Source of the DNA: Penicillus capitatus | Lineage: Eukaryota > Plantae > Chlorophyta | Direction: 5' to 3' | DNA length: 64,000 nucleotides | Assembly: GCA_965649825.1 (NCBI GenBank) | Contig: OZ287697.1 | Coordinates: 1,162,251-1,226,250 of the forward strand | Shown here: positions 4,255-64,000 of the stretch, piece by piece | Layout: every line of letters begins with the position of its first letter | Position numbering within the stretch: the stretch's first letter is position 1 | Translations under genes and position numbers: made by a program | Notes under the pieces: generated by a model | The model's database searches: none | What the model saw: the letters and a program-made list of their open reading frames with translations, nothing else | Told to the model about the DNA's origin: nothing

Positions 4255-5823
<1,569 letters not shown>

Positions 5824-16628: not shown

Positions 16629-19600
16629 ATGCGACACATGAAAACACTTTTGCTTGCCTATTTCGTAACGTGCCGCGTCTTCTGTCCAGTCGGAGCTCGT
16701 GAAGCAGCCGCAAAGCACTCCGTGCCTTCTCACAGCACAACTTTGCGCTCTGAGTTTTTGACGCACGAGACTGCGAAGAAAGAACGTCCATCTATTGCTC
16801 GGCGAGGTCAGAGTGAGAACCATTCTCTGCGACAAGACGATGATGATCTCAACGACGAAGCTCCTGCAAGTGAGACAGACCCATGTACTCCTCGAGAACT
16901 CTTCTTTGACTCAAGTGTTTCCTGTTTTGACAGGCCTTCCTTGTTCGCTGAGTGAGCAAACCATCGGAGACCATCTGAGTGTAGAGACGCGAACGTGGAA
17001 TATAGACCGTTCGCTTCTCGGTCACGTTGAAGATGACATCCAAGTCATTGTCAACTGTACGAAGCCAGGCGACGTCCTCTCCTTTCGTGTGAAGCGCAGA
17101 ATCCGGCCGCCTTCACGCATCGTCATACCATGGGCACTAACGCTGTCTTCTACAGTAGACAGTTCCGAGATCGATGAAGGCGTGTTCCAGCGTTCCGAAG
17201 TAAAGACGACCTTTACCTGTCCGAACAGAAGAGAGGGTGTCTTCTTGGTGAAGTGAGATTCGAATTCTCGCATCTGCTGTTGTCTGATGTTGATCTCGCT
17301 TTCAGGTCGGAGAATGTGACATTAGCCAATCTTATTTTCGAAGGCTGTGCCTTCGACATGACGAACGGCGGTGAGAAGGACGCTATCGTCAGCGTCGACG
17401 TCGATGTCTGTGCCTCATCACATTCAGACAGCGTGGTACGTCTCCACCATGTCGATTTTCGAGATAATATCCTCGCCGAGAACAACGCCATCCGAGTGCC
17501 CTCGACACCATCATGCGCGAATCTGGAACTGATCGACTTTGGTTTCGAAGACAACACCTGCACCGGTCCATGCATCGTCTTCCCGGTGACTCAAAGCAGT
17601 CAGCTGCGCGATATCAGAGTCCAGAACATCTCGTCATCGGGAGAGACTGCCGACGCCACGACCGTCTTTTGGGGACCTCCTGGTTCGAAGATTGAAACCA
17701 CATGGCTGACAGCAGCCAACAACACGATCCAGATCTTCCGCATCGAAGACGGGACGCTGGTACTGAAGGACTCGAAGTTAACAAACAACAGCGCGAGAGT
17801 TGGAAGTCCAGTTTACCTGACAAAGTCCAAGGCACAGTTCAGAAACGTCAGCTTCACTGGAAACGACTTGTCTCACAGCGCTGGATCGATCATGTCGGAC
17901 AACTCGACGATCCGCATAGATAACTGCACTTTTTCAAATGGCACTGTTGCTGAATTCGGCGGATTCATCGATGCCGAAGAGAATTCTCTGGTGACCATCC
18001 GTGAGTCGATCTTCAATCGTGGTCGAGCGAAGGAGGGTGGATGTCTCCGGGCGCATCTCTCGGAACTCACACTTCTTGATGTGACGTTGCGAGAGTGTCA
18101 TTCCGTGATCGATGGAGCAGCGATGTTTCTTTCCAATGTGACTGCCGATATCACGAATACCGTCATGGAATCGAACAGAGCTCTGGATGACGGCGGATGC
18201 CTGCACTTGCACTTTTCTGATGTCCGAGGAAAGGGATGGAGAGCGACCAACAACTCGGCTGGCGACCATGGAGGGGTCATACGATCAGACCTAAGCACCA
18301 CGATCCATCTCACCAACTCCGTTTTCCTCCACAATTGGGCAGACAGAGGGGGAGTCATGTCTCAGGAGTTGAATTCCGTCGTCAGTTTCACAAGTGTTTC
18401 GTTCGTCAACAACTCTGCTGTGACAGAGGGTGGTGCGTTCTATGTCGCTGAGTCGACGACGATTCTCAACGACTGTGCTTCCGATGACAGCAGAGCTGAG
18501 GATGGCGGATTCCTGTTTGCAAGGACGAATGCCACAGTGAACATCACCGCGTCGATCATGAGACATGGCACCGCGAGACGTGGCGGCTGTCTGCTCGCTC
18601 TCGACGGATCTGTGAGTGTTCAGAACTCGGCGCTGGAGGATTGCGTGTCCAACGAGGACGGCGGGGCCATGCACCTACGCAACATCGCAGCACACATCTC
18701 GAATTCCCGCTTCCTATCGAATCGCGCAGAGGATAGTGGAGGAGCCGTCTTCGCCGATGAGAAGACCCATCTCGACGGAGGTGAATGGAGGATTGAAGAC
18801 AACAGTGCCGGAGGCGATGGAGGAGGCGTTTGGCTGAAGCACTCTACGATCCAAGTGAAGGACTCTCTCTTCCGAAACAACTTTGCTGTCCACGGCGGCG
18901 CTGTGCATCAGAGCTCTTCCTCGAATGGAACGTTCTTCAATGCGACGATGGTAAAGAACACATGCTCAGGGCGCGGCGGCGCCTTCTTCACCGTCGATTC
19001 GTCGAAGCTGAGTATCTCGGCCTCCACGTTTCGTGGTGGAAGCGCAGAAGAATACGGTGGGTTTCTTGCAGCCATCTCGAAGAGCTCTGTCGATTTAGAG
19101 CACACGATCATGGCAAAAGGACACGCGACGAATGGAGGAGCCGTTTTCCTGTCCGACAGTCTCTTTGAAGGGGATCATCTTAACATCACCGAATGTGTTG
19201 CCGATTCAACTGGCGGGGCACTCTTCTTCGAATCTATGAACATCACAATGCTCACAGTTGGACTTGATCACTCCATCGTGCAGAACAACAGAGCGCGTCT
19301 AGGAGGTAAGGGAAGGGGCCCGACGCCCGTTTCTCATGCATTCAATGTGTGTCTAAGGAGGCCTGTACATGACAAACAGCAATGGACACCTGTGTGCCGA
19401 TGGCCACTCCGATTGCTTTTTCGTTACTTTAATGAACACGAGTTTCGTGAACAACAGCGCCGAATATGCGGGAGGCGCCATCTTTACGAGCAGCTCTAGG
19501 AACGTTGGCATCAGTTGTGACAGCGAGGCAGACGATGGCGCAGAGAATTCATCATTGTTACTGGCAGAAGCGTTGAATCTGACGATACCCATCTGTCCAT

Positions 19601-21999
19601 CGTGGAGAGACAACACGGCCAGCTACTACGGTCCTGTCATTGCCTCGTTTGCATCGCAGGCCAACGTCATCATCCACGGAAGCAGCATCACCAGTTCAGA
19701 GGACAGTCCTCTATACATGTACAGAAGCGGCTCGCCGCTTTCCATCGGCCTCGAAGTCCGAGATGACTTTGATCAAGGCCCTGCTGTGGGGAGGAATAAC
19801 CGTGTGGTTTCGAGCTCCGTCTCCTCTCCAGATATCCTCTTCTCGGGGAATCACACAATCCTTTTGGAGTCCTTCACTGCCGAACTCAACGTAACTGGAT
19901 TCGCGAAGCCTGGGAACTATACCGTTCTCATCGATTTTAATGAAGAGAACCTCGACAGCGTGGTGATCAAGTTTGAGGTGCAGAAGTGTGCCATCGGCGA
20001 AGTGTCTCTAGGAGGTGGCACTCTTTGTGAGCCCTGCAGTACGACGACCTACAATTTTAACCCAGACGAGGATCACTCGTGCAAGGAGTGTCCCGAGAAC
20101 GGGATCTGCACCACCAGAGTTATCCTACCCGACCGAGGCTACTGGCATCCGACCCCTTGCTCAACACACATCCAGAAATGCCTTTCGACGGACGCCTGTG
20201 ACGCCGACAACCGCCGGCAGACATTGGAAGGGCTCACAAAGGATGTGGAATCCTGTGACTTCAACGAAACGTTCCTCAAGAACTACACACAAGCGCAGTG
20301 CAGTGAAGTGAGCACTGTGTTTGGCTGTGAGCCGCAACCTTGACTGCTATATTGCTGACAGGGTTATGCAGGACCGCTCTGCGGATCTTGCGAGAAATCG
20401 CACGGAAGCTGTCTATCCTCCAAGTGTCAGAAGTGTCCTGCAGCAATCAGCAATGTCATGGTGATCTGCTCTTCGGCAGTGATCCTGCTTGTATTGTGCG
20501 GCATTACGATGAGAGGGACACTAAGTACGACATGCACCCAACGGATGATGCTGTCCGGCGACAGAAAGATTCACCGCAACATCAAACTTGAAGACCTCTC
20601 TCTGCCAAGCACAACGAAACTGCCGGAGATACAACCGTCAGCATCGCACAAGATCGATGGACCGGATGAACACACCGAAATGCCTGGCGTCAGCGAAGCG
20701 ACGATGGCCCAATGGAAGGCGATCGAGATGTTCAAGGTATGACAGTCCCACACCATCTATTCTTCGGAGATGACTGGAATGACAGATAACGCTGAACTAC
20801 CTTCAAGTCACGGTACTGATTGCATCTCTCAACGTCGGATGGGCCGTTCCTGTCCTCATCGTGGCAGAGACGACAGGTACTTAGCTGTCTCAATCCGCCA
20901 TCTCGGCCGATCGATCGTCGTTGCGTGCGATGCAGAATTCTTCGGAGGACTCGCTGTCGAGAGCATCCGGCGTTCTGTGATCTGTCTTGGCAACGAAGAC
21001 CAGTCCCTGCATCCGACTGTGTGGGCCTCGGTCGTGGGCGCCTGTCTCATTCCCGTTTTCGCATTCCTGCTGCTCGTTGCATTCTGGATGACAGTGGCAT
21101 TCCTCCATCAAGTCCAGCAGCCACTCCGTTACATCGCGCAGAGATCCTTGCTTGCACTCATGGCACTGTGGTACATCACTTCTGTCCCCGTGATCAAGAC
21201 CACACTCAGCGTTGTCCTTTGCGTAAGCGCGTATAATATCCTGGACGCCACGGCAGAAGCCGAAGAGATCAGCTACTGGGCAGTGGACACGAGTCTGAGA
21301 TGCTTTGACGGGCAACACTTGACGCTAGTGATCTGGATTCTCCTGTTTGTCAGCGTCGTCTACGGTGGACTGCTCATCGTCTTTATCTCCATCCTTGCAG
21401 CGGCCAAGAAGCTGCTCGAGCAACCAGGCAGCTGGGTCTATCGAACGACTGGATTTCTGTACCGCGGCTACGGATCTGGATGGCGGCGCTACTGGGAAGT
21501 CGCCATCGTGCTAAGGAAGGCGATGATTGCGTTTCTGGTGTTCTGCGCCCATCTCTTTGACAGTCTGTTCCCCATCACTTGCGCTGCTGTTGTTATCATG
21601 CTTGCGATGGGGGCGCAGATTGTGGTGATGCCCTACAGACAGGAATTTCGTGTCCTGAACAGAATCGACGTGTCCGCCCTCTTCGTCTCGCATCTGACGA
21701 TTATGATCGCCAGTATGCTGAAGAGTGAGCGTCTTACCGACGAGTGGCGTGGCTTAGCACTCTCAAGCATCTGTGCCGTGCTCAATATCTCCACCTTCCT
21801 CGTCCTTCTCTCTTTTCTTTTCAACGATGGTGTGCATTGCATAAGGCTCTCCATGATCGAATGCGGAACGCACATCGATGCAGATGCCGGATCGTGGCGA
21901 GTTCTGGAGATCTGGATGCGCACCAATATCCAACTGTTGGTCGATTCTACGCGATTCGACAAAACTTATGATCATTCGAGTCTTTCTTCTGGCGTGTGA
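16629..21999 (+). CDS. Copy A: beta-helix (Pmp-like GGAI/FxxN) / Cys-rich / multi-pass membrane receptor-like protein, subfamily 1
   Basis: Eight exons spliced in frame by eye (intron 1 16870-16933, intron 2 17253-17305, intron 4 donor 20308). Contains a signal peptide, GGA[IVL]/GG.[LF] and F..N.A repeats, an Ig-like segment (GFAKPGNY), C-x-x-C...C..CP.NG.C...I.P..GYW, GY.GPLCG.C, and a TM region with GFLY..Y...YWE..I..RK and PY....N..D. Confidence 0.85.
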
Positions 22000-22399: not shown

Positions 22400-22720
22400 T
22401 ATCGGTACCTATAACTGAGACTTGTTAGAGAACAAGAGAGACGGATCTGAAACATGCCCCATTGTTGCTGGATGTTGTCGACTGGTGTCCAGTTTCGTGA
22501 ATTCGCCATTTGACGCTATCTTAGCGTCTGTCGAGTACTGTCGACAAGTCGTCATCAACTGCATCGACGTAAGCGACGTGTCCATTCTCTGACATCCACT
22601 GATGCATTCGACCATCTGCTTTAGTCGTCATCTCGCCGAACCCGGTCGCCAACGTCGAGATCTCAAACGAAAAGGCTTCCCTTAACGACAACGCACCGAA
22701 CGTCCGTCGAATCGGCAGCT
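22400..22720 (-). pseudogene. Small remnant homologous to the pseudogene-associated segment at 47375-47480
   Basis: The reverse complement of 22600-22720 (gattcgacggacgttcggtgc...gacgttggcgacc.ggttcgg...agcagatggtcgaatgca) matches 47375-47487 and, over 20 bp, 31506-31525. Confidence 0.45.
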
Positions 22721-23976
22721 AGGGAAAGAGATCGGGCATAAAGCCAAAGGCACCGTCCATCACCGATTGTCTCGCCTTCCGCAATCCACCCGGCAGCACG
22801 CAGAAGCTTGCACCGGCCAAATGCTCCCTGTTTGCCGCAATCCTCTGTCTCTGCAGTGACCCGTTCCTTTGTCGGTTTTCCTTTCGGCTCAGACTGGCGG
22901 CTTGATTGCAGGTCTGAATACACAGCGTGAATGAAGACTTCTGCCATCCATTTCGAATGTCTGTACCTTTGCTCTCCGCTGCGGATGTCTTGATGTTGAC
23001 TGTCTTTGCAGAGGGTGCGCGTTGTGAACACGTCGTCCCTGTCGATTCCAGAATCGCAGAAGTCGACTTCGAAGGCGACCACTTCCAGACCTCGTGCCTC
23101 GTTCCACGGCCATGTGTCTCGAATTCTCTGCCATCGTTGGGTCGAGGCATCATGGTGCGTGCGCCTGTCAGAAACATCATCATCGCGGATCCATTCTCCC
23201 GCGTCAATTCTGGCCAACAGATATAGTGAGAGGCTCCATTGCTGCCCCTCTGTAGCGTAACCTGGCTGACAGATTACAAACACCAGCAACTCCTGTGAGT
23301 TGTTCAAGGGAAACGAGTGAAGGTTTGTGAAGGACGAGCACTCCAGGCGAAACCATCTCGCATTCTGTCAGGGGCTGGAGTCTTGTGCGACGATGGGCAC
23401 ATCATCTCATTGTCTTTATGATTGATACCATGTGCTGGACATATGTGATCCTTGCGTGCTTTCGTGTGATTCGCAAGTCGTTGCCTTTAAAACGAGATTT
23501 CCAACGATGCAAACCTCTTTTCATCGTACTCGCGTTCTGTTACGATCTTGCGTCTCAGATGCGATTCTAGAATCTTCTTCATATGCAGTGCAGTCTTCTG
23601 TAGTACCTCAGATGTCTGACTCGACAGACAGACATGCGTCTCGCCTTCGATCAGGCGAAACCAGAGAGGCAATGAAGTAAGCGTCAGGAACGTTCTCCTC
23701 CTCAGTTCCTCTGGAATCAGAATCTCGAGATGTCACTCGTACGAGTCAGGTAATCATTGCTGCCAGTCTACATCCACGAAACGCCGATTGCCGTTCATCG
23801 AGACGGACGACAGCTGAATCACACACCAAAGAGACACTTTTGCTTAAACACTTTCCATTCACAGTTGATGTCCTGTGACGATGCCAAAAATCATTCAAAC
23901 AATGAAAGGTGAGACGGTTTCAATCGCCTTCCTATTCCCAATACACAGAAAGAGATCTAAAAATCGATAAAGCACT

Positions 23977-26900
23977 TCAAACTGCATAATGGCGATATCG
24001 ACGAGATCTTCCTTTGTTGACCCATCGGATCATGGCAGCTATCGCACGAGCGAAGAGGTAATCGACAAGATAGGCATGGAAAATGCGAAATGTGCCTTCT
24101 ACTGGCGAGGAGTGAACTTCTTCTCTGACCAATACACTTCTCAGGTACATAGCCGCAAATGTCACTAAAAGGGCCAACAGGTAAAGAAAGAAGAAGACGT
24201 TTGTACAGAACAGGAAAACGCTCATCAACACACGAACCCCATATGATACACGATCGTCAGTAAAGAAGATGCTGCTGACAAAGGTGAGTGAGGAAAGCAG
24301 AAGGGAAAGGCTCTCCACGTCATTAAGACAATCAAATTCTTCGCGGTAAGGACGACATTTCATCTGGAAGAAAAGTGCCACGATCAGAACGAAGGAGGCC
24401 AGAACAGCCTGGATGTTGGCACCCAGATCGTACGAGAAGACAACCACGACTGCGAGGACTGCTTTCCTGGACATGATCACAGACTCCCAGAAAATGTACT
24501 TCTTACTGTAGGATCGGTAGACGAAACCAGCGACGGCATAGATCCAACCATCCTTGTAATCATCTGTCACTGTCTTGCCGGTGAGGTATGCGATCGCCAG
24601 CGGAAATCCAAGGGTGAAGATGAAGAGGAATGGCCATGCCAGCAAAAAAGCCAAGGCAGCATGGGATCCTTCATAGCACTCAACGCTGGTGTCCACTGTC
24701 CAGTAAACTGTTGTGGCATCAATCCCAATCAGCGTCGAATCATAGACCTCAACGCAGTTGAGGATGTTGACGAGCGTCTTGGTGATGGAGATGTAGCTGA
24801 CGCAGCAGACGACGAGTGCACTGAGGATACAACACTTCAACAGATACATCAAAGGCTTGTTGCTTATGATCTTGATCACCAGCCAGAAAACAGCAAAGAC
24901 ACAGATGCATGCAATCGGCTGCAACACATCCACCAGTGTACCGGCGATTGAACGATGCAGAGAAGCTTCTGCTGGGATAAGGCAGTCGACAGATCGATTG
25001 ACGGCTTCTGATGTGACGGCGCCGACGAACTCTGCAGAACACAGCACGTGTCATGAGAGTGTCTGACAGAGTTGTCTTTCAGTCACCTGCAGTCTGGAAG
25101 AGTGCGATCAGTGCGAATGTCCACTGAGCATCGATAGCCACAGCTATGGCTGTGACCTGCAGAAAGTTCACTGTTATCTGAAGAACAGTTAGGATGCATA
25201 GACAAAATAGGAAATAGAGAGGTTCAAGACCTTAAAGAGCTCGACGGCCTTCCATTTGCCGAGCTCTGCGTCCTCAGAAGATTGACTAGTATCAGCTTCT
25301 TGATTGTGCTCAGGAGTCGATCCTTCTTCTCTGACCTCTACCATAACTGCCAGTTCGATTCTCCTCTCGGACGGGAATGTCTCGGTGCTGGTGGAGGCTG
25401 TAGATAACTGAGAACATTGTGTTTGCTGTTGCGATGAAACAGAGATGAGGTTGCTTTTGATGGTGATGCCGGACAACCCCATCAGAACAAGAAATGACAG
25501 CATGACTAAGACGACATCAGCACCGTCCGATCGACATTCTTCACAGAGATGAGAGCGAGATTTGCCATGGGATTCCTTACAGGATCCGCAGAGTGGCCCT
25601 TCATGCCCCTGAGAACCAAACGACCCTGATGAGTTTTTCAGACAGACTTGAAGCTTGCCTCTCTGCACTGCGCTTCTGTGTAATTCTGCAGGTACTGTTC
25701 ATTAAAGTCACAGGATTCCACATCTTGTGTGAGTTCTGCTAACGCATCTTCGCGTTTCTCACTCTTACATGCTTCTGCTGTGAGACATCTCTGGACATGC
25801 TCTGAGCAAGGAGTTTGATGCCAGTACCCTCTGTTTGGCAGGATGACATGACTTCTGCAGTCCCCGTTCTCTGGACACGGATGGCATTCTAGATCTTTCT
25901 CTGGAGAGAAATTGTAAGCGGCAACATTGCAAGTTTCACAAAATGTTCCATTTCCTGAAGACACTTCACCAATGTCACACGGCTTCACCTCCACAGTGAT
26001 CTCGAAGCTCTCCATGTCCGCTCCTTCAAACTCAATCAGCACATTGTAATTGCCAGGCTGCACGAAGCCGAAGGCACTGAAATTCGCGCCTTCGAAGTCC
26101 AGAGATTTTCTAACACTTCCGACGAAGAATCCATCTGGCGAAGACATCACGGCTTCGACGTCATTTTTCTTCCCAATGACCGGACCTTGTCCGAGCTCAT
26201 CCATTGGTATTAAGACGATTAAAGGAATCGGTTCACCACTTCTGTGTTTGTGTACGGTGTATTTACTCCCATTCGCCAAACTCAGCATTCCCGTCTCTTC
26301 ATCAGCGATTTCCTTCCGGACATCGGATACGGCAGAAGCCACTCCCGGTCCGTATCTCCCAGCTGTATTGTTTTTCCAGGATGGGCAGATGTCGTCGACG
26401 GATGTCAGGCGCTTCATGGACTTCCACTGTTCTTTCGAATAGAATTGCAGTTCCGGTTCTTTCGATTCGCCAGAACAGTTCAGTCGCAGACCAGCCACTG
26501 TGTCAATGAAGACAGCACCACCTGCCGACCTTGCTCTGTTGTCCATCATCGACGTGTCTGCCACGGCTGCGACAATGCATTCATCCTGCTCTGTCCGACA
26601 TTTCTGTAATGTGGAGGGCCTTTTAGCGGCGATTTGGATCCCACCTACGTAAAGAACAGTGTGCACCTCTCTTCGTTGGCCTTATCATGCATACCTCCGT
26701 ATTCGGCTGAGTTGTTAAGGACAATGCTGTTGTCCAATTGTATGGAAATGGATCTAATGCTTTTGAACTGAAAGAATATAGCTCCGCCGCGCGTTGCTTT
26801 GTTTTCGATCAGAGTGCAGCCACTGCAAAGAAGCCTCGATAAATGTTTTCCCATAACAGCACCTCCATCGGTTCCTGCCTCGCAATGCGAGATCTGGGTG

Positions 26901-29170
26901 TTGATAATCTTGAAGACTGATTCGGAAGAGTAGATAGCACCGCCTTGTCCACTGGCGAACATGTCAAAGGCTTCAGTCCTCCGAATAGAAACGTCTGAAG
27001 ACAGTGCATAGATTCCTCCGCCATTTCTTGCAGATCCCTCGGTGAAGTTGCACTTCTGAACCGAGAGGTCGGAGTCTGCGACGTAGATGGCGCCACCAAA
27101 TTCAGCCGCATTGCCGGAGTAATGCGATCCCGTGTCTGAAAATCTGCAATCGGGATCGCATTCGATCACGCCCCCTCCCTCGGCAGCCATGTTGTTCGAG
27201 AATAGGCAGTTCTGAATACGTATCCTGGAAGTTTCGCCGGAGATGAATCCACCACCACTACCCGCAAACAGGTCGGTTGCGAAGGTGTTCTCGACGAAGA
27301 CACTAGAAGAGGATGCATAGATTCCTCCGCCGTCTATCGCAGATCCCTCGGTGAAGTTGCACTTTTGAACCGAGAGGTCGGAGCCTGCGACGTAGATGGC
27401 GCCACCAAATTCAGCCGAGTTGCCAGTGTACTTCGATCCCGTATCCGAGAGTCTGCAATGAGAATCGCATTCGATCACACCCCCTCCGTCAGAAGCCATG
27501 TTGTCTGAGAATAGGCAGTTCTGCATACGTATCTCGGAAATAATGCCGGAGAGGAATCCACCATAGTTACGTGCAGACAGGTTGGATGCGGAAGTATCCT
27601 CGACAGAGATGTTTGAAAACGGTGCATAGATTCCTCCGCCGTCTGTCGCAGAGCCCTCGGTGAAGCTGCACTTTTGAACCGAGAGCACAGAGTCTCGGAC
27701 GAAGATGGCGCCACCTTTTGCTGACGCATTGTTCTTGTTGAACTGACAGTCGGTGATGTTGCATAATGAGTTCTTTTCCACACTTATGGCTCCTCCGTAC
27801 TCTGCTTCGTTCTGTCGACAAAGGCAATCTTTGATGGAAGCTTTTGCATTCTTCAACTGCAGGGGTGCACTGTTCGCACCATTCTGGCCAATCGGAATAG
27901 AATTCCGGTAAAAGACAGCCTTTGTCATGTTCAAAGATCCTCCTTCGACATTGATGCTTGGGCAACTGTTTTGTGTGCTGTTAATGCCATCCATTGACGT
28001 CTCGGATCCAGGAGGCGCATAGAACAATACCGTGTTCGTCTTCTCAGGGTCGTACGGTTTGTTGTTCCGGATAACGATGTCTCTCAATCGATTCTGCCTG
28101 GACAGAATCACGCCACAACGGCCGTCGCATCTATTGCGTTCAACGACGAAGTCGATCAGCTCCAGCTCAAAGCAAGATGGAGACTGCATTGCGAGTCCCG
28201 TGCCTTTGATCAGGGTGTTCTTCCTGAAGCTGATGTGGTGGAACTGAATGGTGTCTCTGAATTGTCTGGATGAACAGTTTTCAACTTCCACGATGGATCC
28301 AGAACTCCCAGATTCGAACGAGCAGTCCTCGAACATCAGATTGGCGAAAAGGACACCTGTCGACCTAAACGCGACATCGATATCAGACAAGAGCAGATGT
28401 GAGAATTCAAATCTCACTTCACCAAGAACACACCCTCTCTTCTGCTCGGACAGGTGAAGGTCGCCTTTGAGTCGGAACGCGGGAACACGCCTTCCTCGAC
28501 CTCGGGACTGTTCACTGGGGCTGTCAGCGTCAGTGGCCATGGTATGACGATGCGCGAAGACGGCCGGATTCTGCGCTTCGGACTGAAGGAGAGAACGTCG
28601 CCGGGCTTCGTACAGTCGACAATGACTTGAATGTCATCTTCGACGTCATCGAGAAGCGAACGGTTGATACGCCACGTTCTCGTCGTTTCGTTTAGATGTT
28701 CTCCGATGGTTCGTTCGCTGAGCGAACAAGGAAGATCTGCGAACACCAAGAGCGCTGGCGTCAAGCAAGCGTTCTCGAAGACAGCAAAGGGCCTTACTTG
28801 TGAGATTGTCATCTCGGCCATCATCTTGGCACAGAGAACGGCTCTCGCTGCGACTTTGCTCAGCCACAGATGGACGTTCTTTCTTAGCAGTTCTGTCCGC
28901 CCTGGACGTCGGGAGCGGAGCTGTGCCGTGTGAGTGCTTCGTCGTGGACGTGGCAGTCTCTGTCGTGCGAGGCAGTGCAAATGGCGTCATTTCTGGGAGT
29001 GTAAACGGATTTGGGGCAGAGGGTTTGGCGAAAAAGAAAGTGGTCGAGGCATCTTCGGCCGTCTCTGCGGCCAAAGCTCGGCGGACATAAAACGTGCGAC
29101 TAGCAAATTCACCAGCGCTTGCGCCGAACACTATGCAAGTCAACAATAAACCAAAGAAAGGGTGTCGCAT
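23977..29170 (-). CDS. Copy B: beta-helix / Cys-rich / multi-pass membrane receptor-like protein, subfamily 2
   Basis: Eight exons in frame. Signal peptide MRHPFFGLLLTCIVFGASA; intron 1 28797-28737; intron 4 is GC-AG (25658-25609). Same domain order as copy A. Closest paralogue is copy D. Confidence 0.87.
27000..27760 (-). repeat. About 2.5 tandem copies of a 309-nt (103-aa) beta-helix unit inside copy B
   Basis: The anchor accgagag(g/c) plus the ...gatggcgccacc context recurs at 27060, 27369 and 27678 (spacing 309). Confidence 0.9.
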
Positions 29171-29223
29171 TTTTCGTCCGGCGATTTAAAGACAACTTTG
29201 ACAGACGCTTATAAACCGTGCGG

Positions 29224-29353
29224 CTTTTATAGTCGGAAAGAGGACATGTGGAACATGAAATTCGCATGAAAATGAGGTGTCCGTCATCTGATCGGAGCTG
29301 TCGCCCAGCCGCCACTAGGAGCCTTCGTCGGAAGCAGGATCCAGCCACGTGTC
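29224..29353 (-). promoter_or_regulatory. Proximal promoter of copy B: TATAAAAG and G-box/ABRE-like GACACGTGGC
   Basis: cttttata at 29224-29231 (TATAAAAG on the minus strand, about 55 bp before the ATG) and gccacgtgtc at 29344-29353; both are conserved in the copy D promoter. Confidence 0.6.
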
Positions 29354-29879
29354 CCATGGTCTCCCGCTCTCGCCCTGAATGCGGAAAGCGTAGCGATTGC
29401 CGTATCCGCGACGGATAACTGCAGTTTACGCGATTGCATTACGGATGAGGCACCACCACTGTTTCGCGGTCTGCTCATCCTGTCGACTCTCGCTTACGGG
29501 AGGTGCTGTCAGACGACAGTGGTAACGAGTAAGTATGCGCTTTCTTCGTCGCACTTCATAAAGTCGAGCGACAACAACACTCGAACACATCTGGAATCAT
29601 CTTCCATGACAGGAGATGACACTGAATCACTCAGTGCGTGTATCGTCATACTTGAGAGTAGTGGATTTCCATTAATGCCTTCCAGCATGGAATTCTTGTC
29701 AACGATCTGTTCAACTCGCTGTCTTGAATTGGCAGTCTGCTAAGAATCGATGGATCATTACATCCAAGGACACAATACACTTTATCATCTGTCACATCAT
29801 GGAAAGAAACGATGATGGCAATTATTGGCATGAACTGTATGTGTGATCCCAGGAAATAGTCTGATCTAATGGAAGGGGT

Positions 29880-48998: not shown

Positions 48999-49126
48999 GA
49001 CACGTGGCTGGACCGTGGTTTCCGACGAAGGATCACGGTGGCAGCTGGACGACAGCTGCAAGCACGTAACTGACACATCGTCGCGCGAATTTTATACCAC
49101 AGCTGTCCTCTTTACGACTATAAAAG
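48999..49126 (+). promoter_or_regulatory. Proximal promoter of copy D: G-box/ABRE-like GACACGTGGC and TATAAAAG
   Basis: gacacgtggc at 48999-49008 and tataaaag at 49119-49126, about 45 bp before the ATG at 49171; conserved with the copy B promoter. Confidence 0.6.
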
Positions 49127-49170
49127 CCGCACGGTTTTGTTGAAATTGTCTTCAAGCCACCTGACGAAAA

Positions 49171-52100: not shown

Positions 52101-55100
52101 GGGAGCATCTCCCTCCAAGACAACTCGTCTGGCATCATAACCGACTGCCAGTTCGACAAGAACAATGCATCCAGATCTGGAGGCGCTGTATTCGTCGCGA
52201 ATTCCGCCCTCTCCGTTAAGAAGTGCGACTTCATCGAGGGATCTGCGAAATACGGTGGAGGAATATATGTATCCTCTTCAAACATCTCTATCCAGAACAC
52301 CGACGCTTTTTACATGTCCGCCAGTGAGCAAGGCGGTGCTGTCTTTCTTTCCAAATCTGTCTTGAAGGTCAGCAGCACCCAGATCTCACAATGCGAGGCA
52401 GGAACCGATGGAGGTGCTATCATGAGCAATGATTCATCAAGGCTGCTCTGCAGTGGCTGTACTCTGGTGGGCAACAAAGCAAGCCGCGGTGGAGCCATAT
52501 TCTTAGAGTACAATGACACTAGATCCATTTCCCTGCAGCTAAACAACAGCAATGTCCTCAACAACTCAGCCGACTATGGAGGTGTTCGTGTCAAGCCTAA
52601 CAAAAGGAGATTCACACTGTTGCGCTTTACTTTTAGGAGGGATCCAAATCGCCGCTGAAATGGAGTCCACATTACAGAACTGTCGGACAGAACTGGATGA
52701 ATGTGGAGTAGCGACTGTGGCGAACACTTTAATGATGAACAACAAAGCAAGGTCGGCAGGCGGCGCTATCTTCATTGACACAGTGGCTGCTCTCCGACTA
52801 CGTTGCTCAGATGAATCGACAGAACACGGAGTGCAATTCTATTCGGAGAAGCAACGGGAATCCATGAAGAGCTTGACATCCATCGATAACATCTGCACAT
52901 CCTGGACAAACAACACAGCTGATAGATACGGACCGGAAGTGGCAACGTTTGTATCCAATGTCCAGAAGAAGATCGTCGATGAAGAGACAGGAGACTCGGA
53001 GTTAGCGGATGGAAGTCCCCTCACGATACACAACCACAGAAGCGGAAAACCAATACCTGCGATTACCCTAATGCCAGTGGATGAACTCGGACAAGGTCCG
53101 GCTGTTGGGGAGAACAATGAAAACATCGAGGCTGTGATGTTTTCAGAAGATGGATTCTTCGTTGGCAGTGTTCGCAAGCCTGTGGGTGTCGAAGGCGCGA
53201 ATTTCAGTGCCATTGGCTTCGTACAGCCTGGCAATTACAACGTTTCAATTGAGTTTGAGGGAGCCGACTTGGAGAGCTTCGAGATCACTGTAGAAGTGAA
53301 GCCGTGTGAAATGGGTGAGGTGTCTTCAGGTAATGGGACATTCTGCGAATCTTGCAATGTCGCCTCCTACAATGTTTCTCCAGAAAAGGACATGGAATGT
53401 CATCCGTGTCCAGACAACGGAAACTGCACCAGTCAAGTCATCTTGCCAGATCGCGGATACTGGCATCAGACACCATGCTCAGAGCGCGTCCAGAGATGTC
53501 TCACAGCAGAAGCCTGTAAGAGGTATAATCGAGAAGATGCGTTACTGGAACACACACAAGATGTACAGAAATGTCAATTCGACGATCAGTACCTGCAGAA
53601 GTACACAGAAGCGCAGTGCAGAGAGGCGAGCACCGGGTTTGTCTGAATTCTTCATCAAGTTCGTCTGGTTCTCAGGGGCATGAAGGGCCACTTTGCGGTT
53701 CATGCAATGCCACGTATGGCAAATCTCACTCTCATCTCTGTGAAGAATGTCGATCGGACGGTGCTGATGTCGTCTTAGTCATTCTGTCATTTCTTGTTCT
53801 GATGGGGTTGTCCGGCATCACCATTAGAAGCAACCTCATCTCTGTTTTTTCATCGAAGCAACAAACACAAGCTACTCAGTTATCTACTGCCTCCACCAGC
53901 ACCCACACGTTACCATCCGAGAGGAGAATCGAACTGAAAGTTATGGAAGAGGGCAGAGAAGAAGGATCGACTCCCGAGCACAGTCAAGAAGCTGATCGTG
54001 ATCAATCTTCTGAAGACGCAGAGCTTGTCAAATGGAAGGCGATTGAGATCTTTAAGGTCATCACCTTCTCTGTTGCCTGTCGTGCCTATTCATCTAACTG
54101 TTCTGCAGAACACAGTGAACTTTCTGCAGGTCACAGCCATAGCTGTGGCAATCGATGCTCAGTGGACATTCACACTGATCGCACTTTTCCAGACTGCAGG
54201 TGACTGAAAGACAACTCTATCAGACAGTCTCATGACACGAGCTGTGTTCTGCAGAGTTCGTCAGTGCCATAACATCAGAAGCTGTAAATCAATCCGTCGA
54301 CTGCCTTATCCCAGCAGAAGCTTCTCTGCATCGTTCAATCGCCGGTACACTGGTGGATGTATTGCAGCCGTTTGCGTGCACCCTTGTCTTTGCTGTTTTC
54401 TGGCTAGTGATCAAGATCAGAAGCGACAAGCCTTTGATGTACATGTTGAAGCAGTGTGTTCTTAGTGCACTCGTTGTCTGTTATATCAGCTACATCTCCA
54501 TCACCAAGACACTCGTCAACATCCTCAACTGCGTCGAGGTCCATGATTCAAAGCTGGTTGGGATTGATGACACAACAGTTTACTGGACAGTGGACACCAG
54601 CGTTGAGTGTTACGAAGGATCCCATGCTGCCTTGGCTTTTTTGTTGGCATGGCCATTTCTCTTCATCTTCACCCTTGGATTTCCCCTGGCGATCGCATAC
54701 CTCATCGGTAAAAATGTGACAGAGGATTACAAGGATGGATGGATCTATGCCGTCGCCGGTTTCGTCTACCGATCCTACAGCAAGAAGTACATTTTCTGGG
54801 AGTCTGTGATCATGTCCAGGAAAGCAATCCTCGCAGTCGTGGTTGTCTTCTCGTACGAGCTGGGTGCCAACATCCAGGCTGTTCTGGCCTCCTTCGTCTT
54901 CATTGTGGCTCTTTATCTTCAAACAACATGTCGTCCTTACCGCAAAGAATTTGATTGTCTTAACGACGTGGAGAGCGCTTCCATTCTGCTTTCCTCGCTT
55001 ACCTTTGTCAGTAGCATCTTTTTCAGTGATGGTCGCGTATCCCATGGGGTTCGTCTGTTTATGAGCGTTTTCCTGTCCTCTGCAAACGTTTTTTTCTTTC

Positions 55101-55309
55101 TCTACCTGTTGGCCCTTTTAGTGAGATTTGCGGCTATGTACCTGAGAAGTGTATTGGTCAGAGAAGGAGTTCACTCCTCGCCAGTAGAAGGCACATTTCG
55201 CATTCTCCGTGCCTATCTTGTCGATTACCTCTTCGCTCGTGCGATAGCTGCCATGATCCGATGGGTCAACAAAGGAAGATCTCGTCGATACGGCCGTTCT
55301 GCAGTTTAA
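49171..55309 (+). CDS. Copy D: beta-helix / Cys-rich / multi-pass membrane receptor-like protein, subfamily 2
   Basis: Eight exons in frame. Intron 1 49550-49609 is 60 nt and stop-free, so the ORF track reads through it. Intron 4 donor is GCGAGC at 53626. The TM exons are nearly identical to copy B. Confidence 0.87.
50590..52290 (+). repeat. About 4.4 tandem copies of a 387-nt (129-aa) beta-helix unit inside copy D
   Basis: The anchor ca(a/g)tt(c/g)(a/g)a.aagaaca recurs at 50601, 50988, 51375, 51762 and 52149 (spacing 387), with long stretches identical between units. Confidence 0.95.
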
Positions 55310-58196
55310 AGTTGCTTTGTCGTTTTCAGATCTCTTTCTGTGTAATGGGAATAAGAAGGTGATTGAAACCTTCTCCCCTTTCAGTGTTTGACTAGTTTTT
55401 GGTATCGTAAGAGGCTATCAACTGTGAATGGAAAGTGTTTAAGTAGAACTATCTCTTTGGTGCGTGATTCAATCGTCGTCCGTCTCGATGAACGGCAATC
55501 GGCGTTTCGTGGATGTAGAGGGACAACAGCAATGATTGCCTGACTCGTAGGAGTGACATCTCGAGATTCTGATTCTACAGAAGCTGAGGAGGAGAATGTT
55601 CCTGACGCTTACTTCATTGCCTATCTGGTTTCGCTCTGATTGAAGGCGAGACGCATGTCTGTCTGTCGAGTCAGACATCTGAGGTACTACAGAAGACTGC
55701 ACTGCATATGAAGAAGATTCTAGAATCGCATCTGAGACGCAAGATCGTGACTGAACGCGAGGACGACGACAGAAGGCCTGCATCGTTGGACATCTCGTTT
55801 TGAAGACAATGAGTTGAGAATCACACGAAAGCACGCAAGGATCACATATGTCCAGCACATGGTATCAATCATAAAGACAATGAGATGATGTGCCCATCGT
55901 CGCACAAGACTCCAGCCCCTGACAGAATGCGAGATCGTTTCGCGTGGAGGGCTCGTCCTTCACAAACCTTCACTCGTTTCCCTTAAGCAACTCCTGTGAG
56001 TTGCTACTGTGTTATCTGTCAGCCAGGTTACGCTACAGAATGACAGCTAGTTCCAGAGTGGCAGCAATGGAGCCTCTCACTATATATGTGCGCCAGAATT
56101 GACGCGGGAGAATGGATCCGCGATGATGATGTTTCTGACAGGCGCACGCACCATGATGCCTCGACCCAACGATGGCAGAGAATTCGAGACACATGGCCGT
56201 GGAACGAGGCATGAGGTCTGGAATTGCTCGCCTTCGAAGTAGACTTCTGCGATTTCGGAATCGACAGGGACGGTGTGCTTACAACGCACACCCTCTACGA
56301 TGACAGCCAACATCAAGACTTCCGCAGCGGAGTTCAAAGGCACAGACAATTCGGGATGGATAGCAGAAGTTTCAAAATTTCGCACGGACATCACTTGTGT
56401 CGTTTTGTTAGAGTACAGCGCACTGAAGCGATTGTCAAGGCCAGTAGATAAAGATCTCATGTATTCGATGTTCTCGAACATCGATAAGAAAACATACGAG
56501 ATGTTAACGCATTACATTTGACGTTATGTAGAACCTGAGATGAAAGAGCCTGCGAAATGATCGTGTATCACAAATAGTGTCCGTTCTTATGTTCGACGTT
56601 CTTTCAAAAACAACCTCATTCTCATTGTTATCGATTGAAAATGCGTTAAGCCATCGCCATAAAGCCACATTGGGATAGCAAGGATTCGTAACTCGAATAG
56701 CTGTGCGGATATCATCGTGATGTGTTTGTTCAGTTGTCGAGACCATTATCAAAGAGATAATATACAATGATGAAAAACGACCTCCGCATTGTTTCATCGT
56801 CGGACATCCCAGTGAATGCAAGGCTGCATATTATCTAAACCATTCATGCGTTTCACTCTGTGAGACGATTATCCTTTAGGTGATAGACAGTGAGTGATGT
56901 GGAGGATGGTATTCTCTTGAGATTAACGCGATAACCCGATTCCTGCATACCACCTTGCTGGAGATGCGAGTGGCTATGGGCGTGGTGCCGTAGCAAACCA
57001 GTTGGACACGTAACGAACCATGTGTGTTGAAATATCGCCGAGGACGACGACGCATGCATGAGCTTCTTTGGCAAAATTTCCGTTGTTGAGCACCTTTTCT
57101 TGTTTCTCTTGAACGCACTGAACTTGAGTTGTTGTTTGACGTGACAGAGAAATGTGGTCTTTGTTGAAGTGGGCGTTGATTGTCTCCGTGTTTCAAAATT
57201 TTTTGCTGGTTCTGGGTGCTGTGGTTCGAACTCGGGTTCATCCGTTCGCTCGACGAATCGACGCGACACACGACAGAGGGGCAGATGCACGACAGGCTTC
57301 GGGATTCTGCCGTCGATTGCCTCTATATAGAGATGTCACGTCATGTCGTCGTAATCATGCGATGGTCTGTAATGAACAGAGAGCGAAATCCTTCGGCGAT
57401 AGTTGGTGTCGAGTTAGCAGCGCTTGAGGTCAGGCGGTTTGTGCTGTTTCCAATGTCATCGGTAGAAAAGAAGTGCTTTAGCTTTAGACAAGATCGGCGC
57501 GATGGATGACGCAAATGCGATCCGGTCTTCCTTCTACAACTCTGTGTTGTGATGTTGTTTGCTTGTTATGACGGGTAACTGAAGTGTCAGACGTGAAGGA
57601 TGTGACAGTCCGCGGGAAAACAGTGAAATGCATAAAGAACTGATGTTGCAGTAGTATTTTGTAAAAGCTAAATGATGGGTTGGCAACAGTCGCCGCGTGA
57701 TCGATAGATTGCTCTTATCGTAGAGGCATGGTACATCTTAGATTTCGACAGTAACAGGCAGAGCACACGAAAGCAGTCATCATTGTAAACGCGATCTACT
57801 TCTTCATCGACCTTGTCATTCAAAGGGCACTGTTTACACACTCGATTGGTGCGAGACGCCTCGCCCGTCTGATCGAGACCAATCGCCGACACAGTGAGTC
57901 GAACACAGACTCAATTCTGCCGTACAAACTTCCTTACTCAATAACGTGTCAGGCGTTTTGAATACTTAATACACCTCCAAAAAATACGTTCCGGCGGATA
58001 AATGGCGACTTCATCACAAGAGATTAGGTGCTGTATTGGCTTGCTATACTCGTAGATTGCTCATCTAGTCTTACTCTTGGCGATGGTCGAGTTTAAACAT
58101 CCGCGTTTGCGTGTTGACGATAGATAATGCTCTTGCACTTTGCACTTTACAGTTTGGCGACACCGCAAGTCGATGATGTTACAAACGGTCAATCTG

Positions 58197-60438: not shown

Positions 60439-60554
60439 AGTATCCGTGCATACGTCCCGTTGATGGATCGTGGGTTTGGCTCACTTCTCTTAGTTTAATC
60501 TCAACAGCCAGTGCCCGTCGAAAATCCCTCCTTCAAAGGTCTTCTAACCCGGAC

Positions 60555-60965: not shown

Positions 60966-61788
60966 ACGCATGCCTTGCCCTTTTCCTGCACGGCCATGTA
61001 AAAGCTCTATAAAGTGTCCATCGACGGATCGTGTTGAAGAGCTCACCGGTGCCATTCATCCAGAGCTTCGTCTTGCTCGTCTGTCCCTTTGGCGCGTCAA
61101 AAAGTCTCTCAACGTATCGAACGAGGGACGGCACGATGTGTTTTCGGCCTCTTGTATCGTTGATTGGCCGCTGTATACTTGCAGAAGCCCAACGATGAAC
61201 AAAGTAAACAAATGAATGCGACGATTAGTGTCTTCGATTCGACTCTCTGTGATCCAGAATGAGCGATACGCCGCGATGAGGTCGATCCGCAACCCGACCT
61301 TCCGACGATTCAGCCGCGCCGCTATGTGCAGTTTAGCAGCTAACCTCGTGGAAAGACAGGTGGGATGAATTCGGTGGTCCGTAGAGACAAGAGTGAGCAT
61401 GCGGAACGCCGACTTCGATGGGAAGGTCGTGCACAAAGGTGTATCGTTCACTGTCGACTGATTTTGTCAAACGATGTCGAAAGAGTTAGGCTGAAAGAAT
61501 CGAAAAAGATGAATCTTCACCGCGGGATCGAAGGACGATTCCTCTATGACCTCCATCCTTTCCAGATGGAAGCAGTAATAATACCGTAAGGAAGACACGC
61601 AAAGGGAAGGAAGCGGGTAGCGGGCGACGAGAGGTGGAATCTCGACATCGCTGCACTCACAGAAATCAGCTCTTTTTAAATTTCAACAGATGGGACAGAC
61701 ACGTTTAGGAAAGACATTCATGTTCAAGGCACAGAGTAAGGAAAACAACAGATGCTGGTCAAAAAGACAGAGCGCAGTCGTCCGATTG

Positions 61789-64000
61789 CTAAGCAGATGT
61801 CAGCCGTACCCCACAGAAGAGTTTGTGAATAGCATTCCTCGCACGCCCAAACAGGTAATGGTAAAAACAGACCCACAGGATGTGATGGGAACCGCCATCT
61901 GGCTTGTAAGGCACCCCCTTTTCATTAAGAACAGTTCTCAGGTAATCGGCAGCGTAGATAACAAAGACAAAAAGAAAGAACAGAAAGAGAGCAATGTTCC
62001 AGAATGCAAGACCGACAGTAATGACGACACGAACGTTGGAAGACACGTGCTCGTCTCCGAAGAACATACTCGAGCCGAAAGTCATCGCAGAGACCAGAAT
62101 AGACAGACTCTCCATCTTGTTCAGGCTGTCGAATTCTGGACGATAAGGACAGCACATCGTCTGAAGGAAAAGAACAAAAAGGAAAAGGAGCACGACGAGG
62201 ATATGCTGCAGATTGGCACCCAGAGGGTAAGAGAAAACGACGATCACTGCCAGAACAGCCTTTCTGAGCATAATCACAGATTCCCAGAACACATAGTTCT
62301 TCTTGTAGGAGCGGTACAGGAAACCGCACGTCTCGTAGATCCATCCGCTCTTGTAGTCCTCTTCGACGTTTTTAGCGGTAAGGAAAGCAGTGGCTAACGG
62401 AAACCCGAAGGAGAAAACGATCAGCAGGGGGCATCCCAGCATGAAGGCTAACAAGGCATGGGGTCCATTGTAGCATTCGATCTCGGTGTCAGTCGCCCAG
62501 TAGTCCGATGTGACGTCGATCTCGAAGTCGGCAGAATCGTGAACCTCCACGCAGTCCAGGATGCTGACGAGCGTCTTGGTGAGGGAGATGTAGCTGATGT
62601 ACAGGACGGCGACGGCCGTCAGGATGATCTTCTTGAGCAGGTAGGACCACGGCTCTCCTCGCTTGACCTTGATGGCCAACCAGATCACGCTGAAGACGCA
62701 GATGACTCCCAGGGGGATGCAGACGTCGATGATGACGCTGGCGATCGAACGATCCACCGAGGCACCGTCCGGGACGATGCAGTCCACTGACCGGTTCACC
62801 GCCTCCGAGGTAATGCCGCTGATGAACTCTGCAGAAGACAACAGAGAATTAGACGTTCTTATTTAAACCCTCTCCCACCTGCGCCTTCGAACAGAGCTAT
62901 CAGCATCAGAGTCCACTTGACGTTGATGGCGATGGCCACTGCCGTTACTTGGAGAAAGTTCATCATGATCTACATGCAGCAAAGTGTCTTTTAGACAGGG
63001 GAGGTTTGCTCTACCTTGAACATTTCTACAGTCTTCCACTTGGCCAAGTCTGCATCTTCGGATGGCGTTTCGGACACTTGTGCTGAATACAGTTCTGGTT
63101 GCAGAATCTCGGGCGGAACGCGACCGGTGACTATCATCTCCACCATTTCTTCATTAACAGGGACCGAGATTGATCTGCTCGGCAGAGACCTCAGCTGGCG
63201 AATGGATTCGACAGAATTGCCCCCCGAAGTTGGAGTTGAGATTGTGTTGCTTCTCACTGTGATATACGACAGTGCCAGGAGCACCAAGAACGACACAAAG
63301 ATCAAGGCATAGTTACCGAATCCAGAGAAGCACTCCTCACACAATGAAGAGTGAGACTTGCCGTAGGAAGGCTTTGCAGGATCCACACAGAGGGCCCTCG
63401 TGTCCCTGTAGCGACAAACTTGTAGAAACAAGCTACAGCACCCAGAGATCACCTTTCTGCACTGAGCTTCCGTGTAGTTTTGTACATACTCCTCATTGAA
63501 TTTACAGCTGCTGATGTCTCTCGTTGCTGCTGCCATTCTGACTTCCCTCTCTTCTGAACTGCACGCTTCTGAAGATATGCACTCTTGGATGTTCTCGGAA
63601 CAAGGAGTCTTATGCCAGTATCCCTTTGCTGACAGGATGACGTGAGTCGCACAGTCTCCGTTTTCGGGGCAAGGATGACATCCTGTCCCGTCGTTGCCTG
63701 GCTGAAGGTTGTATGTGTCAGAGGTGCAAGGTTCACAGACGGTTCCGTTGGCAGCGGCCACTTCACCGAGCCTACATCCCCTGACGTGCACTTCGACCAC
63801 AAGCGACTCGATTAGTCGTTCGCTGAAGTCGATGATGCATTCGTAGACGCCCTCTGGTCCAAACCCGACCACTCCTGAGAAGTTCCCGACGCCTTCCTCT
63901 ATCTCAATCTTGATGGATCCAGTGAAGAAATTATCTGGAGAGGGTCATCACAGCTTCGACAGTGCCACTGTTGAGAACAAATGCCGGTCCTTGTCCCAAT
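61789..64000 (-). pseudogene. Copy E: 3' half of a subfamily-2 receptor-like gene with two +1 frameshifts (pseudogene or assembly error; 5' part lies beyond the window)
   Basis: The TM exons are intact (TSEAVNRSVDC...GFLYRSYKKNYVFWESVIMLRKAV). Alignment to B/D needs removal of one base at the GGG 63942-63944 (EAVMT-SPDNFF) and one at the TTT 63373-63375 (GPLCGSCK-PSYGKSH). Confidence 0.7.

Follow-up and report, generated by a model that had tools for sequence, protein, structure and literature searches.

Which proteins does the large gene array of the siphonous green alga Penicillus capitatus encode, what might they do, and how does the array change? We addressed these questions in a window of 64,000 nucleotides (nt), meaning the whole stretch of DNA from contig OZ287697.1 of assembly GCA_965649825.1 (positions 1,162,251 to 1,226,250), and analysed its part from 16.6 to 64 kb. 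A first-pass annotation had recorded there an uncharacterised family of receptor-like surface proteins. The family turned out to have characterised kin: profile comparisons relate its membrane core to that of the CRMP receptors (cysteine repeat modular proteins) of Apicomplexa and ciliates. They place it as a new algal member, bearing a β-helix of the Chlamydia Pmp type, of the known but poorly characterised CRMP/PF06011 superfamily. We hold this identity, together with a birth-and-death mode of evolution, with high confidence. An unannotated gene family of siphonous algae is now tied to two experimentally studied groups, namely the CRMPs, on which triggered exocytosis and the invasion of host cells depend in Apicomplexa, and the Flc/Pkd2 proteins, which are linked to Ca2+ entry and mechanosensing in fungi.

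Gene models and integrity of the array

Five loci were mapped by tblastn with a hand-built model of gene D. Splice junctions were picked by conservation of the junction peptide among paralogues, a choice that replaced a minimum-intron dynamic program giving wrong junctions. The array is tandem and partly inverted, and is part of the nuclear DNA of a bryopsidalean green alga, a siphonous and coenocytic organism. Together, tblastn, spliced models, hidden Markov model (HMM) searches and blastn revealed four intact genes (A, B, C and D), one broken gene (E) and relics; tblastn and the gene models confirmed the places and orientations first proposed for the five paralogues (A+, B−, C−, D+, E−).

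Gene A (16629–21999, plus strand; 1679 amino acids (aa)), an intact member of subfamily A/C, comprises exons 16629–16869, 16934–17252, 17306–19305, 19358–20307, 20362–20736, 20786–20876 and 20936–21999, with no internal stop in the spliced model. The other intact A/C gene, gene C (34562–41029, minus strand; 2044 aa), has exons 41029–40751, 40693–40257, 40195–37314, 37266–36281, 36219–35827, 35775–35685 and 35628–34562. Subfamily B/D/E includes two intact genes: gene B (23977–29170, minus strand; 1623 aa), with exons 29170–28798, 28736–28418, 28364–26695, 26644–25659, 25608–25231, 25177–25087 and 25031–23977, and gene D (49171–55309, plus strand; 1937 aa), with exons 49171–49549, 49610–49928, 49982–52581, 52637–53625, 53676–54056, 54109–54199 and 54255–55309. 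The spliced open reading frames (ORFs) of all four are uninterrupted over 4.9–6.1 kb.

The common exon plan noticed earlier is conserved, with one intron more than is obvious: A–D each have seven exons and six introns of 47–64 nt at conserved positions. Exon 2 measures 319 nt in A, B and D, and exon 6 measures 91 nt in all four intact genes. Intron 2, present in all copies by alignment of A, B and D, is a 53-nt element (GTGAGA...TTTYAG) at 17253–17305 (A), 28365–28417 (B) and 49929–49981 (D). Its conservation among these three genes is about equal to that of the flanking exons. The peptide VRFE(F/L)SHLLLSD, which looks like conserved coding sequence and could mislead a reader or an ORF caller, is in fact read-through of this intron. 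Another intron sits inside the variable leader. All introns follow the GT-AG rule except intron 4 (junction J3), which has a GT donor in A and E and a GC donor in B, C and D, the non-canonical donor being kept in three of the five copies. These GC-AG introns lie at 25609–25658 (B), 36220–36280 (C) and 53626–53675 (D), with donors GCAAGC, GCAAGT and GCGAGC, respectively.

Gene E (61789–64000, minus strand; subfamily B/D/E) runs past the end of the window. Its last three splice junctions and last-exon ORF are intact. Relative to B and D, it carries two single-base (+1) insertions, at ~63935 in exon 4 and ~63377 in exon 5; because neither falls in a long homopolymer, E is probably a pseudogene. 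Might the array, then, consist mostly of dead DNA, that is, of unexpressed pseudogenes? The broken state of E and of the relics would fit, but A–D stay open through six introns with intact splice sites and show ratios of nonsynonymous to synonymous substitution (dN/dS) well below 1. We consider this explanation extremely improbable for the array at large, and a wholly dead array is excluded for A–D.

A nine-helix membrane core related to CRMPs and PF06011

Hydropathy analysis resolved the earlier estimate of about 8–9 transmembrane (TM) segments into nine hydrophobic helices in each of A–D: TM1, an acidic, Ser-rich variable loop of ~85–100 aa, and eight more. TM1 and TM2 are encoded in exons 5 and 6, and seven helices in the last exon. 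Consistently, an AlphaFold2 model of the last exon of C (predicted local distance difference test (pLDDT) 76.8) contains seven long TM helices and a β-hairpin bearing conserved Cys residues. An N-out/C-in topology is predicted, since the proteins have a signal peptide and an odd number of helices, and conserved loop Cys residues occur only in predicted outside loops. The nine-TM domain contains two invariant motifs, GF(L/V)YRxY...(Y/F)WE...RK and P(Y/F)Rx(E)F..LN..E, both of which would lie on the cytoplasmic side given this topology. The membrane domain had been described as conserved, which is true of its length and motifs but not of its overall sequence: the TM domain is ~28% identical between subfamilies, below exon 4 at 38–42%, and it surpasses the stalk in conservation no more than it does exon 4.

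To place this domain, CRMP TM-core sequences were taken from S2 Table of PMC9815656 and compared with the family by hhalign. An alignment of 19 last-exon sequences (A2) matched TgCRMPA with a probability of 94.8% (E=4.9e-8) over 183 columns. The spliced C-terminal regions of A–D (A3) matched the three CRMPA-clade cores (A4) with 95.9% (E=5.8e-9) over 390 collinear columns that start at the Cys knot and reach as far as the final TM helix, and 79 family TM domains (A6) matched the same cores with 99.3% (E=7.7e-21) over 222 columns. On these profile alignments, the nine-helix core is judged homologous to the conserved CRMP core of Apicomplexa and ciliates. In the hhalign alignment, the pattern G.LCG.C...(Y/H)G...C.(E/K)C of the family coincides with the CRMP Cys knot. 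The TM cores of TgCRMPA and TgCRMPB match a single Pfam family, DUF7630 (E=9e-18 for the TgCRMPA Cys knot); this family was undetected in the scanned C-terminal halves of A and D and gave weak matches in the relatives P0172 and P0160.

The CRMPs compared (TgCRMPA/B, Plasmodium CRMP1-4 and Tetrahymena CRMP1/2) thus share with the window family a collinear core in which a putative Cys knot is followed by TM1, by an 'IK(I)..NY' helix and by the motifs GF..G(F/Y)...W(Y/W)WE...RK and PFDKR...L(E), as well as nine TM helices and a huge modular ectodomain. The N-out/C-in orientation predicted here has been shown experimentally for TgCRMPs. In contrast to the 2–4 conserved CRMP copies, the algal family has dozens of tandemly duplicated ones; its ectodomain carries a Pmp-type β-helix in place of EGF, Kringle or MAR modules, and TM1 and TM2 of the window proteins are separated by an insert of ~90 aa. 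CRMPs have been described as Cys-rich modular proteins with nine TM helices and homologues in Dictyostelium, and the SMART domain key of the published architecture figure lists Ephrin-receptor-like, EGF-like and parallel-β-helix modules (PMC9815656).

Word-indexed homology searches returned only unnamed ORFs of ENA assemblies; named relatives came from an exhaustive search with the TM-domain profile, which returned 9519 proteins at E≤0.001 among representatives at 50% identity and so revealed a broad distribution of the nine-TM domain. One of these, the Ostreobium member P0172, matches PF06011 (E=3e-13; 49.8 bits versus a gathering threshold of 28.5) across the very stretch to which the window profile aligns, and UniRef names the Ostreobium member 'TRP C-terminal domain-containing protein'. 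PF06011 was matched by 19 of the 79 close relatives of the TM domain at E≤0.01, and no other Pfam family recurred. PF06011 proteins include fungal Flc1-3, Aspergillus TrpR and S. pombe Pkd2, the last of which we take to carry the domain. They resemble the window family in having a signal peptide and an extracellular N-terminal domain before the multi-pass domain. According to the Pfam scans, the fungal-type N-terminal domain is replaced in the window proteins by β-helix, β-sandwich and Cys stalk, and the window proteins are much larger and belong to a clustered multigene family.

The CRMP membrane core and the PF06011 (Flc/Pkd2, 'TRP-like') domain therefore appear, from these sequence matches, to form one superfamily bridged by the algal family. 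We regard this bridge as the most interesting by-product of the analysis; it suggests that CRMPs may have, at their membrane core, a channel-like domain of the PF06011 family and not one resembling GPCRs. The term PF06011 does not occur in the text of either CRMP paper (PMC9815656, PMC9670195). The first-pass annotation had proposed comparing the domain with TRP-like/FLC-Pkd2 and G protein-coupled receptor (GPCR) folds. The former comparison succeeded in that relatives match PF06011, but a 7-TM GPCR or canonical 6-TM TRP/polycystin fold gained no support, given nine helices and no significant Foldseek match in the PDB (TM-scores 0.18–0.27). With those proteins, including adhesion GPCRs, the family shares only a concept, a large adhesive ectodomain joined to a multi-pass signalling domain.

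A Pmp-type β-helix precedes the Cys-rich stalk

Each gene encodes a giant membrane protein of type-I-like build. The predicted order of parts agrees with the one first described: signal peptide, variable low-complexity leader, Chlamydia-Pmp-type β-helix, probable β-sandwich, Cys-rich stalk, TM1, loop and eight TM helices. All four intact proteins begin with a signal-peptide-like hydrophobic stretch followed by the variable leader. Pfam scans of the ectodomain ORFs detected Chlam_PMP (PF02415) repeats in A (E=4.6e-7), B (E=3e-14), C (E=1.3e-13) and D (E=2.8e-13), and no other family above the cut-off; DUF5123 gave weak matches below the cut-off in A and C. A β-helix built from GGA(I/L/V) and FxxN motifs had been proposed. 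Its GG part is well borne out, with 20–29 GGx-hydrophobic motifs per ectodomain compared with about 2 in shuffled sequences, but FxxN is only modestly enriched. N-glycosylation sequons are present at ~2x the number expected from shuffles. The shared repeats, the predicted passenger-like parallel β-helix and the variable repeat number all recall the chlamydial Pmp autotransporter adhesins. The window genes differ from these in being eukaryotic, with six spliceosomal introns, and in encoding a Cys-rich stalk and nine α-helical TM segments instead of the autotransporter β-barrel.

The region after the β-helix, encoded by exon 4, had been called Ig-like, a label that receives weak backing. The AlphaFold2 model of exon 4 has a pLDDT of 46 overall, with an all-β module at residues ~105–225 (pLDDT 54–78) for which Foldseek returned β-sandwiches of filamin, FN3 and macroglobulin type; searching the PDB with a sequence profile of exon 4 returned no match. 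A β-sandwich is probable from this model. The stalk ends, as judged from sequence, in a putative membrane-proximal Cys knot. Its proposed GCC2/GCC3 type was not upheld: GCC2_GCC3 was not found in Pfam scans of the window proteins, and the stalk gave no significant match, the nearest being Ephrin_rec_like (PF07699) in A alone (E=0.035; 14.3 bits versus a cut-off of 23.1).

A right-handed β-helix is also the fold of pectate lyases and related enzymes. Together with the match of the Caulerpa relative P0067 to Beta_helix (PF13229, E=2e-29), this raises the alternative of an endomembrane or wall-biogenesis protein. The β-helix would then act on carbohydrates, as a lyase- or epimerase-like enzyme in the lumen or apoplast, and be anchored by an Flc-like transporter domain whose service to the secretory pathway might concern the homeostasis of cofactors or Ca2+. 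In keeping with such a role, S. pombe Pkd2 is reported at both the endoplasmic reticulum (ER) and the plasma membrane, and the fungal Flc proteins (PF06011) take part in calcium homeostasis and flavin transport (PMC9600462). However, the window repeats match adhesin-type Chlam_PMP rather than an enzyme family, with DUF5123 weak only; expansion by blocks of rungs and dozens of divergent copies suit binding modules better than an enzyme, and the CRMP relatives are surface-exposed. We therefore think this alternative very unlikely.

A candidate receptor for Ca2+ entry or triggered secretion

On balance, we lean towards a ligand- or force-sensing receptor that would control Ca2+ entry or triggered secretion, because there are two precedents by homology, the CRMPs for exocytosis and S. 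pombe Pkd2 for Ca2+. CRMPs are surface-exposed in N-out/C-in orientation, and in Toxoplasma and Tetrahymena the triggered exocytosis of rhoptries and mucocysts requires them (PMC9670195, PMC9815656), and reconstituted S. pombe Pkd2 passes Ca2+ under membrane stretch (PMC9727806). More tentatively, we propose a specific Ca2+/exocytosis-trigger mechanism. The N-glycosylated β-helix would project from the plasma membrane, where it would bind a polysaccharide, wall or foreign-surface ligand or bear mechanical load. Signal or load would pass via a rigid Cys-rich stalk to the nine-TM domain, which would open a Ca2+-permeable path or signal to cytosolic partners. The cell would then react quickly and locally, for instance by secretion, by plugging a wound or by repairing its wall. 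For giant single cells, the study of surface sensing, of wall integrity and of signalling after wounding thus gains concrete candidate proteins. RNA interference works in Bryopsis.

Several observations weigh against a Ca2+-controlling receptor. The TM domains of the window, searched against Pfam alone or as spliced C-terminal halves, matched no family, PF06011 being absent even at E≤10. Membership of the window proteins in PF06011 is transitive only, running through relatives, since their own TM domains fall below Pfam detection and close relatives match. With regard to a pore, Foldseek of the TM model against the PDB found nothing significant (best E=0.24, TM-scores ≤0.32). Furthermore, few experiments stand behind the Ca2+-channel activity ascribed to the PF06011 family, and fungal Flc proteins are largely found in the ER and endomembranes, so that a plasma-membrane location is not guaranteed. 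Finally, we know of no rhoptries or mucocysts in green algae, and the CRMP role is not literally transferable to them.

The strongest competitor is a non-conducting adhesion protein or co-receptor. Hetero-oligomers like those of CRMPA and CRMPB, perhaps of A/C plus B/D type, would sense contact and license exocytosis or cytoskeletal responses via partners. CRMPA and CRMPB join partner adhesins in a complex that is essential, and channel activity is unreported for them (PMC9815656, PMC9670195); conserved motifs in what are predicted to be cytoplasmic loops would likewise suit partner binding. The arrangement of the genes also bears on this possibility. Each A/C-type gene of the window adjoins a B/D-type gene (A-B and C-D), and such a pair recurs on the related contig L003, giving adjacency for three of the five A/C-type genes, two of them in the window, as would suit co-receptors. 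In contrast, two of the three other A/C-type loci examined (L004 and L005) hold lone A/C-type genes with no B/D-type gene within 10 kb, which rules out obligate pairing. Further weakening a non-conducting role, the PF06011 relatives Pkd2 and Flc are tied to Ca2+ permeability or homeostasis. Taken together, we rate this competitor as somewhat unlikely and keep the Ca2+- or secretion-controlling receptor as our preferred reading.

A broader proposal is offered here as a rather unlikely speculation. The CRMP core and PF06011 would be one ancient eukaryotic nine-TM module for force- or ligand-gated Ca2+ entry, multiplied in giant coenocytic algae into arrays of A/C- and B/D-type partners. These would assemble into heteromers in the manner of CRMPA and CRMPB and act at the surface as sensors that set off the very rapid wound-plug or contact reactions of a single giant cell. 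If so, apicomplexan CRMPs would trigger rhoptry discharge by Ca2+ conduction and not by GPCR-like signalling.

Birth-and-death evolution with exon-level gene conversion

How has the array come about? It is a clean case of birth-and-death evolution with exon-level gene conversion and change in repeat number. The processes at work are segmental duplication, inversion, gene conversion between paralogues, expansion of β-helix rung blocks and pseudogenisation. The rapid turnover first ascribed to this clustered, length-variable family is seen in its relics, inverted duplication, conversion mosaics, ectodomain repeat expansion and genus-specific clades.

Relics were sought with the family HMM against all six-frame segments outside the five loci and with tblastn and blastn. 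About five decayed fragments had been counted; relics are indeed present, but two are clear, in addition to a third consisting of a 3' end and flank. Relic F1 (30148–31354, minus strand) joins a β-helix piece (family HMM positions 731–938) directly to a piece of the TM domain (HMM 1610–1756), as found by tblastn and by hmmsearch of six-frame segments (E down to 2.8e-28), and is an internally deleted, frame-broken pseudogene. Relic F2 (47583–48347, plus strand) is a pseudogene fragment of the TM domain only (HMM 1537–1824), broken across frames, with 45% identity to B and D by tblastn and E=1.7e-40 by hmmsearch. The third (46127–46639, minus strand) is the 3' end and flank of an E-like gene, 88.6% identical by blastn over 516 nt to 61346–61858, the stretch in which E ends on the minus strand.

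The two clear relics belong to the arms of an inverted segmental duplication. One arm (22932–31563, minus strand) contains relic F1, B and the 3' flank of B, so that F1 falls in the B-side copy; the partner arm (47430–56374) contains relic F2, D and the 3' flank of D. Between the arms, blastn aligned 47792–49589 with 30575–28757 at 74% in the 5' part and 55200–56374 with 24086–22932 at 89.5% in the 3' flank. A repeat of ~110–140 nt with 80–83% identity occurs at 22603–22716, 31425–31563 and 47375–47567, each time intergenic and beside a family gene or a relic; it may have spread with the duplication unit, or it may be a small mobile element. A 20-nt tandem repeat, CACCTCTCTCCTCAGACCTC, is present in three perfect-looking copies at 43553–43611, between C and D.

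Most of the length variation falls in exon 3, whose measured lengths of 1670 nt (B), 2000 nt (A), 2600 nt (D) and 2882 nt (C) agree with the ~1.7–2.9 kb first given for the ectodomain exon. Exon 3 of D contains a tandem array at 50593–52289 (plus strand) of 4.4 copies of a 387-nt unit (129 aa), which Tandem Repeats Finder (TRF) scored at 2650 with 88% matches and which was also visible as tblastn matches with a period of 387 nt. A counterpart in exon 3 of B (26996–27715, minus strand) consists of 2.3 copies of a 309-nt unit (103 aa, several β-helix rungs; TRF 83% matches, score 985). These rung-block arrays explain the difference in exon 3 length between B and D, the D array making up most of D's excess.

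Pairwise codon analysis by exon revealed mosaic histories. Between B and D, exons 5–7 have 83–93% aa identity with a synonymous divergence (dS) of 0.12–0.22, and their 3' halves are recently converted; exons 3–4 have 66–74% aa identity with a dS of about 0.6, reflecting older divergence. Because dS is lower in the TM exons (0.12–0.22 versus about 0.6), the higher B-D identity there reflects recent conversion, and hence younger sequence, rather than tighter constraint. Gene A is itself a mosaic: its exon 2 is B/D-like (75% aa identity to D, dS 0.36), and its exons 3–7 are 27–42% identical to those of D with saturated dS. The division into subfamilies A/C and B/D/E that had been proposed accordingly holds for exons 3–7 but not for exon 2 of A.

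The first-pass annotation had likened the array to an immune or recognition cluster, and an immune-like or self/non-self recognition cluster under diversifying selection has points in its favour. Turnover is high: there are relics and signs of gene conversion, and the exon that faces the ligand is polymorphic in length; expansions are genus-specific, and NACHT- or LRR-type genes lie near family members on related contigs. The mode of selection does not agree with it: dN/dS is 0.17–0.48 in all exons of all pairs, and the ectodomain exons, at 0.25–0.48, are no higher than the TM exons, these averages leaving room for site-specific positive selection. Because dN/dS lies in this range in every exon and every pair, purifying selection dominates, and we regard a recognition cluster under diversifying selection as unlikely.

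Relatives and genomic neighbourhood

The best full-length relatives are hypothetical proteins of Caulerpa lentillifera (g3968, g3776, g3773-g3787 and others), Bryopsis sp. KO-2023 (GMH45542 and others) and Ostreobium quekettii (CAD7697722), with E-values for the TM domain down to 1e-132. Two relatives scanned end to end have β-helix/Chlam_PMP repeats ahead of a C-terminal TM domain, and other relatives among the matches listed are 1500–3400 aa long with the TM domain at the C-terminus. These proteins belong to the same family in other species, and a neighbour-joining tree of TM domains groups the copies in genus-specific clades. Caulerpa g3968 is the sister of the B/D/E clade of the window, the majority of the Caulerpa copies group by themselves, and the A/C clade is separate and deep, with no Caulerpa member among those sampled.

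Judged by model number, the Caulerpa copies are clustered too, with five members between g3773 and g3787, and the family member g3968 adjoins g3967, a homologue of the strictosidine-synthase-like (SSL) gene of the window. This adjacency and clustering suggest that the locus and its clustering habit are old and the copies young, with an array position that may be syntenic across genera. The window has ~50% GC content and is eukaryotic nuclear DNA, with housekeeping genes to the left of the array. The single-exon SSL gene (5943–7187; PF03088/PF08450) is 53% identical to Caulerpa lentillifera g3967, 42% to its Ostreobium quekettii homologue and 39% to that of Bryopsis sp. KO-2023. The SSL gene and the receptor family thus have their nearest named relatives in the same three genera, which points to a bryopsidalean source and speaks against the apicomplexan or oomycete origin considered at first. 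An 88%-identical SSL copy is present on a contig of another sample (ERZ26696514). S-adenosylhomocysteine hydrolase (4255–5738, minus strand) is represented by two ORFs, probably split by a short intron near 5224–5264; among PDB entries it matches the plant (Lupinus) enzyme best, with those of Plasmodium and Cryptosporidium far behind. A small Cys-rich ORF (7209–7592, minus strand) is, by our reading of the sequence, presumably PHF5A-like, and an ORF at 7668–9137 carries what we take, by eye, to be DEAD-box helicase motifs.

Among the neighbours of family members on related contigs (L003 16076–19621; L004 3285–4100; L005 12960–17425) are a NACHT gene with HEAT/ARM repeats 5 kb downstream of the B/D plus A/C pair, an LRR_14 gene and a retroelement (RVT_1, rve and aspartic protease). 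The last-exon ORF of B is identical to protein P0001 on the ENA metagenome-assembly contig ctg340516_41x_l (1.46 Mb; sample ERZ25074695), of which the window represents bases 14695–78694. Family members or syntenic genes were found on contigs of this sample at 12x, 13x, 41x and 344x coverage and of sample ERZ26696514 at 96x, and counts of database 'paralogues' from such contigs of differing coverage are not assignable to one genome. Those samples seem to contain several siphonous algae that are related to each other, or several subgenomes; four subgenomes have been described in Halimeda (PMC11441479).

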